Source: Salpingoeca rosetta
Taxonomy: Eukaryota; Protista; Choanoflagellata
Reading direction: 5' to 3'
Assembly (NCBI GenBank): GCA_033442325.1
Contig: JAWQFM010000030.1
Coordinates: 606,465 to 649,790, forward strand
Length of the DNA stretch: 43,326 nt
Below, one piece after another: positions 30,453 to 33,863 of the stretch. Below the pieces are notes generated by a model. It worked only from the letters and a program-made list of their open reading frames with translations. It did not search any database and was not told where the DNA came from. The first letter of the stretch is position 1, and each line of letters begins with the position of its first letter. The translations under genes and the position numbers were made by a program.

Positions 30453-31430
30453 GCAAGATGTGGCTCGGTGATGGGCAGGCCGATGCAAAGGTGCGCACGC
30501 TGGGCGGCAGCAGCAGCAACAACGCTGGCAGGACGTGGGGAAATGAGAAGACGTCGAAGCAAGACAGCAATCCGTCCCCCCATGCAACAACACCACCACA
30601 ACAACAAAAACGTGCAGCCTGTGTGTGCTGGTGCTGGCAGTGTTGTTGCTGTTGACCGGGTGGCTGGCTTGTTCCGCACGCACACACAGCAGTGGGGAGG
30701 GAGAGAGTGTGTGAGTGAGTGAGAGGTGACCAATGGCTGGATGGTTCAGTGAGCGCGCGCGGGGGTGTGGGGTGGTGTGTCCTTTGCCAGGCAACACCAA
30801 CCAGTGGTTGTCCGCGCGATATTTGGATGTGGGTGTTTAGTTGTTTGGTGGAGGTTGGTTGGCTGCGCGTGTCCGAGTCGTAGCGGGGGCAGTAACGGTC
30901 GGATACGTGGAGATGGTGGGTGCTCGCGCACTTGCACCTTGGTGCTTGCAGGCAACAACCCTTCCCAGTCGCCGTGCAACGCGGCGTGTTGTAGGGACGG
31001 CTTTGGCGTGTTTAACGACGCAAGTCTGCACGCCTCCACTGGTGTTCTGCCGTGTTCTCCTGCACGTCTTGATGTGCGTGTGTCCCTCGCTCCCGTGGCT
31101 GTCGCTGTGCGAGCACAGCTCGTCGTTCAGGCAACCCCCAAGTATCGACACGTCTGCCCGTTGGTTGTGGGCTGTGCGGTGGTTGGTTGGTTGGTTAGTT
31201 GGTTGGCCTACTGGGTGGTTCACTCTCACTCCCATCACTCACTAACAGCCACACTCGCAGTGGCCTGGGTGATGTGATCGAGTTGGCTGGCAACCTGCCA
31301 CGTTGCCCAGAGGCACCGCCGCCGCCACAGATTCAAACCAACACCCGAAAACAACTGCATGCACGCATCGTTGACCGGCAATGGCTGTATGCAACATCAT
31401 TTATTACAAATAAACTGAATTCAGTCGCGC
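30453..31430 (+). CDS. Possible small spliced hypothetical gene
   Basis: Several short AG...GT-bounded segments (about 30790-30828, 30952-31024, 31119-31159, 31261 onward) can be joined in frame. No domain, secure start or stop was found. Confidence 0.2.
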
Positions 31431-31432
31431 GC

Positions 31433-31538
<106 letters not shown>

Positions 31539-31748
31539 NNNNNNNNNNNNNNNNNNNNNNNNNNNNNNNNNNNNNNNNNNNNNNNNNNNNNNNNNNNNNN
31601 NNNNNNNNNNNNNNNNNNNNNNNNNNNNNNNNNNNNNNGCATATGTGTGTGTGCATATGTGTGTGTGTGTGTGCATGTGTGTGTGTGTGTGTGCATGTGT
31701 GTGCACCATCTCTCTGGTGGTGTTAAAGGACTCAAAGTTGCCATCTGC

Positions 31749-32056
31749 TCATTGTTGCTGTGCGCGCTGTCGCTCAAAGTCCAACACCATCTCCTGCGCA
31801 ATGCACAACGACATCCGTCCACCCATCCATGCACTGTAAGGATCCGGGAATGCCCCAGACACACGGCGGAGGGAGGCATCAAGTAAAGCGACCACAGTCG
31901 TACGCACATCCACACACACACACACACACCCAGAACACAGACACACACCCAGAACACAGACACACACCCAGAACACAGACACACATCCACACACACACAT
32001 GCATGCACAAACACATGCACATGCAGAACACACACACAGGCACACACACACCCAGA

Positions 32057-32088
<32 letters not shown>

Positions 32089-33734
32089 ACATTCACATAC
32101 CTGTCGAAAGATGTGTGATCCCGGCTCCCACGTGTTGTGGTCGTCGGAAAAGCCAAACCACTTGATCAGATACAGCTCAAGGCCATCCGATGCCCGCGTG
32201 CGCTTGTCCAATATCGCCTCCACAAGCAGCGGCGTGGACGCTGCGACTGGAATTGCGTCGTTGCCGTTGCTGCTGACAACATTATCGCCACCGCCACCCT
32301 TGTCTTTGCTGCCTGTCACGTGTCTACCCTTGCTGGCAGTGCTGTGTTCCTTGTTGTTGCTGCTGGTGCTGCACATCTTTTCGCTGTTGCTGATGCTGTT
32401 GTCGTGGTTGGTGGTGCTGGTGCTGTCGTGTTGTTCATCTCCACCATGACGGGACTCGACCGTGTCGATGTCCTGCGCGCGACCGTCGTCGTCTTTGCCG
32501 TCGCCGTTGTCGTCGCTGCTGGGATCGGGTGCGATGTGGGCTGGATCCGGGGTGGATATGAGCCGGGATGCTGCCACATTTGCAGAAGTGGCGTGGGTTT
32601 GTTTGGCGTGCGCTGGCGGCGGCGACAGAGGTGGTGAGGACGGTGAGCGGGGTGACGGCCTGGCAATCACCGCTGTCGCTGTGGTGATGATATCGCCGCT
32701 GTGTGCGCTTGCGGCTGGCGTCAGTGCAGCCTTCCTGGCCGTCTGCTTCCCCTTTGCCATCGTGGGTCCCTTCTTCGGGCTCGATGCCGCGCTTGATGAT
32801 GATGACGACGAAGACCCCTTGCCGGTTCAAGACGCAGAGCAGTGATGGCACATGAGCGGATGCGTGTGTCGCATCGTTGATGCGACGGGATGGAGTGAGA
32901 TGAGGTGAGATAACATGGGGGGGGGGGAAATACCATGAATATTTGCGTACTCCATACACATCCATGCGCGCTTCCACCCATACACGCACAAGCACAAACA
33001 CAAGCACAAGCACAAGCACAAGCACAAGTATACAAGTACACAAGCATACAAGTATACATACATACAAGTATACAAGTATACATACATACATTCATACACA
33101 CATACATACATACACGCACACAAGCACACACAAGCACACACACATGCAACAGTTTCTTTGAGCTTACGAGGAGTCGCATGGCGAGTTGAAGCTTCCGCTG
33201 TTCTCGGCGCGACGTGTCCGGATCAAAATACTCCACACTCTCCTTTGAGTGGGTCACAAGTCGGCTGAGCTCTCGACTCTTGCCGCGCGTCGGTCTGGCC
33301 ATGCCGCGTCTCCCTGGTGACGCCGGCAGTGACCCTGATGATGACGACGACGGCGACGACGACGGCAGTGGTGGTGGTGCCAGTGCTGATGTTGCGTGCT
33401 TTTGTTGCTGCCGATTCCCATCCTCGTCCTCCGTTGTTGCTCTCCTCCACTTGACCCTCTTGTTCCTCAAGTCGCCACCACCATAACTTTCCCGACTGCC
33501 CCAGCTACTGCCACGACGACCGCCACTGTCGCCACCTCTACTCCCTCGACTCCCTCGACTCCCTCGACTCCCTCGACTCCCTCGCCTCGCACCTCTACTT
33601 CCTCTACTTCCTCTACTTCCTCTACTTCCTCTGCTACCACCTCGATCACCCCTGCCTCTGCTTCCGCTGCCACCACCACCACCACGGCTGCTAACACCAC
33701 CACCACGGCTGCTAACACCACCTTGCCTCATCAT
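31749..33734 (-). CDS. RG/RS-rich chromodomain protein (about 442 aa) with internal histone H3-tail-like motif and C-terminal chromodomain
   Basis: Exons 33734-33168, 32817-32101 and 31793-31749, all phase 0. N-terminus MMRQGGVSSRGGG...(RGS)n; internal MAKGKQTARKAA; chromodomain LLVEAILDKRTRASDGLELYLIKWFGFSDDHNTWEPGSHIFRQ|EMVLDFERQRAQQQ*, matching the VE-I-KR...YLxKWxG...TWEP...C-terminal helix consensus. Confidence 0.8.
33530..33640 (-). repeat. 9-bp coding tandem repeats encoding (RGS)n
   Basis: Plus-strand units ctccctcga and cttcctcta, each repeated about 4 times, in exon 1 of the chromodomain gene. Confidence 0.85.
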
Positions 33735-33863
33735 CGTCCCCGGATTGCGGAAAAGTGACGATGTTGCCCACAAATCGTCACAACTTCCTTGCCCCAACTT
33801 CACACGAACAACAAACAACAAAAAACAACAAGCAAGCGCGAGCCACCACAACACACGCCCGTC
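33735..33863. promoter_or_regulatory. Very compact bidirectional promoter/5'UTR region
   Basis: Only 129 bp separate the two inferred divergent ATGs. Confidence 0.45.

Follow-up and report, generated by a model that had tools for sequence, protein, structure and literature searches.

The question raised by this locus is whether a chromodomain protein of the choanoflagellate Salpingoeca rosetta carries within its own sequence a copy of the N-terminal tail of histone H3. The gene concerned, PTSG_10631, lies on the minus strand of S. rosetta nuclear DNA within a window of 43,326 nucleotides (C30:606465-649790 of the genome; positions below are counted within this window), and its protein has been placed on GL832992.1. 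The initial annotation, made from the bases alone, had described a stretch M-A-K-G-K-Q-T-A-R-K-A-A in exon 2 of a three-exon gene, identical to the H3 N-terminus at 8 of 10 positions with the Met in register, in a polypeptide that ends in a chromodomain about 175 residues downstream. We confirm this observation: the motif is there, it is in register with H3, and a chromodomain lies at the C-terminus. It is likely that the frame of the motif is the one translated, judging from sequence statistics weighed against a public annotation that was refined with RNA sequencing data; that the motif is a functional H3K9-type mimic acting mainly in trans is a reading we put forward tentatively.

In order to establish what the DNA encodes, we translated the minus strand from 32829 to 32101, which gives ...PKKGPTMAKGKQTARKAALTPAAS... 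without a stop up to the splice donor (CAG/GTATGT) after 32101. The motif, MAKGKQTARKAA, is encoded at 32760-32725 in an open frame common to it and to the downstream chromodomain; its ATG is at 32760, its KQTARK core occupies 32748-32731, and the twelfth codon of the stretch ends at 32725. Compared with the start of the canonical H3 genes of S. rosetta itself, MAKGKQTARK is identical at 8 of 10 residues (the differences are R2>K and T3>G), KQTARK corresponds exactly to H3 residues 4-9, and the Met is in register with the Met of H3. The further statement that the Ser at position 10 is replaced by Ala stands only in part: the motif has Ala at this position (numbered without the Met), but the canonical H3 genes that we fetched encode Thr there rather than Ser. 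Thr at H3 position 10 in S. rosetta is also recorded in PMC12572184. The synonymous sites of the motif codons differ from those of the H3 genes, and no histone Pfam match is found in the motif-frame translation; the motif does not look like a histone fragment. Downstream of an in-frame TGA (32829-32827), no start codon occurs before the ATG at 32760. An internal-repeat relationship between AKGKQTARKAAL and AHAKQTHATSA was considered and rejected, as 62% of shuffles score equally high.

The chromodomain encoded in the same frame matches Pfam PF00385 with an E-value of 1.5e-11 and 44.4 bits, against a cut-off of 25.1. It starts about 176 residues after the motif, which agrees with the distance first proposed, and the last exon, EMVLDFERQRAQQQ, completes its last helix, with the protein ending right after it. 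Among solved structures, 56 chromodomain chains match at E<=1e-3, the best being CBX5 (1.5e-9), and the nearest relatives of the domain are CBX5/HP1alpha, CDY1, CBX2, CDYL and MPP8, all of which are readers of H3K9me/K27me. The best matches (CBX5, CDY1, CBX2 and MPP8; PDB 3fdt, 6v41, 5epk and 3lwe; E-values from 1e-9 to 1e-7) have the NTWEP core in common with PTSG_10631, as well as W and F/Y in the cage; PTSG_10631 differs from them in having no chromo shadow or other domain, in its C-terminal chromodomain, and in the change of the first cage Tyr/Phe to Leu. Pfam finds Chromo only: no chromo shadow domain follows the chromodomain, as it would in HP1 proper, and no other domain is present in the protein, whose remainder is a Ser run together with low-complexity sequence of Pro/Ser-rich, acidic and S/N/T-rich composition. 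The positions equivalent to the cage are occupied by L242 (32229-32227, a little upstream of where Pfam matches), W265 (32160-32158) and F268 (32151-32149). The W and F of HP1alpha (W41 and F44) are thus kept, whereas the first position, Y20 in HP1alpha and F6 in CDY1, is Leu. The 150 nearest proteins supplied 442 instances of the chromodomain, of which 162 could be aligned at the first cage position; 145 of these (90%) have Y, F or W there and 5 have Leu. Judging from these residues, methyl-lysine binding by the PTSG_10631 chromodomain appears uncertain rather than excluded, and strong binding is doubtful.

The translation of exon 2 matches one protein, PTSG_10631 itself ("Chromo domain-containing protein", 217 amino acids, P0001), with 99% identity. 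A scan of metagenome contigs for the junction of exons 2 and 3, seeking a transcript-derived contig, gave 0 matches. The name PTSG_10631 was not found in those parts of paper full texts and genome-paper supplements that the search covered. The public gene model starts at ATG 32955 with a first coding exon of 22 nucleotides (32955-32934), splices out a 116-nucleotide intron (32933-32818) after it, and removes a 130-nucleotide intron (32670-32541) to regain the frame of the chromodomain. The public protein reads MEYANIHG/VFVVIIIKRGIEPEEGTHDGKGEADGQEG...HHHSDS/AHIAPDPSS..., and the motif region is read in another frame as ...THDGKGEADGQEG...; frame-diagnostic peptides would be KAALTPAASAHSGDIITTATAVIAR and GKQTAR for the frame of the motif and GIEPEEGTHDGK for the public frame. 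Sequence statistics support the three-exon model of the initial annotation better than this public model. They also favor its upstream exon, the borders of which had to be corrected to 33302-33168, with the donor GT at 33167-33166. The proposed open reading frame comprises 45 + 239 + 14 = 298 codons, and its first exon joins the acceptor in front of exon 2 (which starts at 32817) in phase; the public model uses the same acceptor. The features of the locus are as follows.

33168..33302, minus strand: proposed coding exon 1, 45 codons, MARPTRGKSRE...LQLAMRLL; suggested by frame periodicity, and not in the public model.
32818..33167, minus strand: proposed intron 1, 350 nucleotides, GTAAGC..CAAG; in architecture and size like the 32 inferred real introns introduced below.
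32101..32817, minus strand: exon 2, 239 codons in a single open frame; from translation, Pfam and frame scores.
32731..32760, minus strand: H3(1-10)-like decapeptide MAKGKQTARK, residues 65-74 of the proposed 298-residue protein; from translation.
32541..32670, minus strand: 130-nucleotide intron of the public model, GTGATT..CCAG, probably coding (SPRSPSSPPLSPPPAHAKQTHATSANVAASRLISTPDP); from a coding-versus-intron log-likelihood ratio of +9.4.
32101..32223, minus strand: N-terminal part of the chromodomain; Pfam PF00385.
31794..32100, minus strand: shared intron, 307 nucleotides, GTATGT..GCAG; present in both gene models, donor 8.0 bits.
31749..31793, minus strand: last exon, 14 codons (31793-31752, EMVLDFERQRAQQQ) and stop codon (31751-31749); C-terminal helix of the chromodomain.

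The ATG of proposed exon 1 at 33302 has G at -3 and G at +4, and the exon ends in phase 0 before GTAAGC; its peptide has no Pfam match and no homologue. Proposed intron 1 consists of a 5' half with a TG microsatellite and a C-rich 3' half, and both the 22-nucleotide first exon of the public model (32955-32934) and the 116-nucleotide intron fall inside it, the former in mid-intron. Exon 2 encodes, besides the Ser run and the H3-like motif, disordered stretches of Pro/Ser-rich and of acidic composition, and it includes roughly the first 40 residues of the chromodomain. Upstream of proposed exon 1, the minus strand at 33540-33720 carries a tandem 9-nucleotide repeat (GAGTCGAGG-like) within a long open frame that encodes SRG/RGG repeats, with in-frame ATGs near 33735. 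The protein may start further upstream than 33302, and the frame scores upstream are ambiguous.

In order to decide between the two frames, we used a 3-periodic Markov model, for which open frames surrounding Pfam kinase matches supplied 38 kb of trusted S. rosetta coding sequence as training data; in leave-one-out tests the model chose the right frame in 90-99% of windows of 126-300 nucleotides. For comparison, 32 real introns were inferred in kinase and myosin genes from pairs of exons whose profile coordinates abut. Splice-site weight matrices were built from 18 confident S. rosetta introns; they discriminate poorly and were not used as decisive. The inferred real introns (loci L048-L081) have a (TG)n-rich 5' half and a C- or (CA)n-rich 3' half, and an expectation-maximization-weighted matrix of all inferred donors has G at +3 in ~81% and a GTGNGT-like consensus. 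From ~32630 downstream, the frame of the chromodomain is ahead by 60-85 nats. Within 33302-33168 the ATG frame is preferred by 14.2 nats, a value matched by 3 of 1000 shuffles and by 0.35% of real-intron windows, and the exon has a coding-versus-intron log-likelihood ratio of +17; the segment 32955-32818 is intron-like, with a ratio of -9.5.

The alternative is that the public model is right, that the motif is not translated in this frame, and that MAKGKQTARK is an out-of-frame coincidence. Several points weigh against our preferred frame and for the public one, beginning with the P0001 sequence itself. The S. rosetta genome annotation consists of ab initio/EVM models that were subsequently refined by PASA/Inchworm with RNA sequencing data (PMC4054682), and because of this refinement the public model deserves a real prior. 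Between 32817 and 32671, where the motif lies, the annotated frame is level with that of the motif or leads it by 1-3 nats, and the splice sites of the second public intron are acceptable at the donor (4.6 bits) and good at the acceptor (6.2 bits), to be compared with 3.4 bits for the donor of proposed exon 1 and 0.7 bits for the acceptor that both models share. Our search of sequencing runs found the stretch in none of the listed runs recorded as RNA; the full matches are contig sets of 21-77 Mb, which are possibly DNA. Set against the public model are its 22-nucleotide first exon, the T at -3 of its ATG and the 1.8 bits of its first donor, which is lower than in all 18 confident real donors. 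Both introns found only in the annotation (116 and 130 nucleotides) are shorter than all 32 inferred real introns, which measure 166-426 nucleotides with a median of 268, and both of their donors have T at +5, where 17 of the 18 confident donors have G. The second of these introns scores as coding: its ratio is +9.4 in the frame of the motif, while windows of real introns score -11 at the median and +2.1 at the 95th percentile. The public frame also reads the (TCR)n repeat at 32814-32794 as VFVVIII, although such repeats are read as Ser in 54 of 55 trusted coding occurrences, and 12,764 trusted residues contain no run of at least 6 V/I/F as opposed to seven Ser runs of at least 5. Finally, it leaves the periodic, ATG-started and in-phase exon 33302-33168 unexplained. 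Taken together, these statistics make it unlikely that the motif is an out-of-frame coincidence. The 5' structure of public PTSG_10631 is probably wrong, in that two of its introns are implausibly short and a coding exon seems to have been overlooked; this matters for any user of this gene model independently of the question of mimicry.

PTSG_10631 is best explained as a small, lineage-restricted nuclear protein of ~298 amino acids, with a long disordered N-terminal part and a single C-terminal HP1/CDY-type chromodomain. Within the disordered part, the motif could be a short linear histone mimic of the H3K9 type. H3 residues Q5-T6-A7-R8-K9 form the segment that is clamped by HP1 chromodomains (1KNE-type structures), and this segment is also recognized by H3K9 methyltransferases. 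The QTARK-A core of the motif is identical to the clamped segment in QTARK and has Ala at +1. We propose that K74 would be methylated by the H3K9 writer of the cell and that the methylated motif would then serve as a docking site for HP1-type readers. The action would be mainly in trans, with the protein either being drawn into the K9me network or vying with H3 tails for binding, and fold-back onto its own chromodomain would be less likely because the cage is degenerate. Both H3K9 and H3K27 methylation have been detected by mass spectrometry in S. rosetta histones (PMC12572184), and since H3K9 methylation is present a K9 writer exists in this species. Six-frame genome scans for Pre-SET and Chromo shadow domains were blank, but so were the control scans, which makes the blanks uninformative.

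If real, the motif belongs to a known class of histone mimics and is unusual within it in the length of its identity and in its reader-type carrier. To our knowledge, contiguous identity in known mimics is 3-4 residues, and the six found here exceed that. G9a/GLP carry an automethylation site (ARKT) that is bound by HP1; like PTSG_10631 they have an H3K9-like A-R-K motif in the disordered N-terminal region of a chromatin protein. There, however, the carrier is a writer, the identity spans 3-4 residues and docking has been shown, whereas PTSG_10631 is a reader-type carrier with 6 contiguous (8 of 10) identical residues, known from its sequence alone. Swi6, the fission yeast HP1, is likewise a chromodomain protein with an ARK-type motif of its own, in a loop that mediates autoinhibition and competes with H3K9me for the cage; in Swi6 this loop lies inside the chromodomain and acts between dimer partners with an intact cage, while in PTSG_10631 176 residues separate the motif from the chromodomain, whose cage is without the first of its aromatic residues. 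K126 of LIG1 (TARK) is read by the tandem Tudor domain of UHRF1, and the ARSK tail of influenza NS1 is an H3 mimic. Both resemble the proposal in that short H3-tail mimicry recruits or sequesters histone readers, but they involve other readers and contexts, and the NS1 mimic is terminal, as only that of a hypothetical short isoform of PTSG_10631 would be. It is well established that K-methylated H3K9-like motifs in non-histone chromatin proteins recruit chromodomains of the HP1/MPP8 class: K16me3 of ATF7IP recruits the MPP8 chromodomain (PMC6172828), and SETDB1 is automethylated on H3K9-like motifs (bioRxiv 10.1101/2025.10.22.683908). In both, as in our proposal, a non-histone H3K9-like motif is read in trans by chromodomains of the class nearest to that of PTSG_10631; these are animal proteins in which methylation has been demonstrated, as opposed to an orphan with no known partners.

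In order to estimate how often such a motif would arise by chance, we searched the 55-Mb genome with a back-translated degenerate pattern for KQT-A-[R/S]-K, which gave 13 sites compared with 3 for the reversed control. KQTARK is encoded at 8 of the 13: in 4 H3 genes (one of them a variant), at the PTSG_10631 site, and at 3 non-coding CA-rich sites. The hexamer alone is not rare. The joint event of an exact KQTARK in the frame of a chromodomain gene with M-A in register is expected roughly 1e-3 to 1e-2 times per genome. We also examined conservation. The exhaustive search of representative sequences yielded 662 matches, all of them via the chromodomain and many of them multi-chromodomain proteins of unrelated eukaryotes or metagenomes, and neither KQTARK nor QTARK occurs in the best 150 of these 662 matches. 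To judge from these searches, the protein looks lineage-restricted and fast-evolving.

Chance has to be weighed carefully against the reading of the motif as an H3K9-type mimic, and stays a serious rival because the motif was singled out after the fact from the some 250,000 windows of a very large scan. In this alternative the motif is translated but fortuitous, a chance match to H3 in a low-complexity, K/A/T/Q/S/P-rich disordered region of an orphan protein, with the Met register coincidental. A number of results count against mimicry and are accommodated by chance. The expected number of chance KQTARK occurrences, calculated from amino-acid frequencies, is ~0.3 per proteome, and three further copies do exist in plainly non-coding CA-rich DNA. 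Similarity to H3 stops at residue 10, where the motif continues as AALTPAAS and diverges fully. Neither an orthologue of PTSG_10631 nor a conserved flank turned up in searches of 5.8 billion clustered proteins and of 1.84 billion representatives. The chromodomain keeps two of the three aromatic cage residues, and the Ala at +1 in place of Thr or Ser may lower the activity of the writer. In the proposed model the motif is internal, at residues 65-74 of 298, so that the register of the Met would be of consequence only in a hypothetical short isoform with its start at ATG 32760. Chance has to contend with the low expectation of the joint event in one of few chromodomain genes, and an exposed QTARK in a nuclear protein would likely be seen by K9 writers and readers whether it was selected or not. 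We regard a fortuitous motif as a possible explanation, only slightly less likely than mimicry. A more specific version of mimicry, and a subset of it, is that the reader carries its own ligand. Methylation of the motif would cause autoinhibition in cis or oligomerization through the protein's own chromodomain, or else the short isoform would expose, after removal of the Met, a free AKGKQTARK N-terminus as a decoy for the enzymes that write, and the proteins that read, H3K4/K9 marks. The favorable context of ATG 32760 (A at -3, G at +4), the ~170 disordered residues that would permit fold-back and the precedent of the Swi6 ARK loop speak for it, but the Leu at the first position of the protein's own cage makes strong cis binding of the methylated mimic doubtful. 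Since exon 1 appears to be coding, two or more in-frame AUGs would precede ATG 32760, and the changes R2>K and T3>G eliminate residues on which the readers and writers of H3K4 rely. We consider this version quite improbable, and for the mimic itself we retain the tentative reading of an H3K9-type motif acting mainly in trans.

Provided that it is both translated and methylated, the motif would be the longest contiguous H3-tail copy known from a non-histone protein. A reader-type protein of this kind in a genetically tractable choanoflagellate would offer a simple system for studying how histone mimicry tunes H3K9 methyl signaling outside animals and fungi. If the motif is fortuitous, it is a useful caution that exact six-residue matches to H3 arise by chance about once per few proteomes.

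Several further observations were made on related sequences. Two related multi-chromodomain proteins from Logan assemblies, P0105 and P0138, contain H3K27-like TKAARKST / TKGARKST in their linkers, which are possible histone-mimic motifs as far as the sequences suggest; ARKS occurs 3 times in the 57,852 residues of all 150 proteins, compared with ~1.2 expected. The H3 variant gene of S. rosetta (G000:C5:489493; L014, around position 1500) encodes Ser10 and a short insertion ahead of an intron, while the canonical copies encode Thr10, and this difference may be relevant to the reported failure of H3K9me3 antibodies in S. rosetta. Of two tandem H3 copies at G000:C32:367975 (L063, minus strand), one departs from the H3 frame beyond residue 24 (…RKQLATKGCPQVRP…); this copy is broken or represents an H3.3-like gene with an intron.

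Downstream of PTSG_10631, a single-exon gene of 132 amino acids without a Pfam match is annotated on the same strand (30837-31235, minus strand), ~500 nucleotides past the stop of the chromodomain gene. It may be part of a 3' untranslated region rather than a gene. Between the two, at 31537-31638, a 100-N assembly gap lies inside a (CA)n tract.

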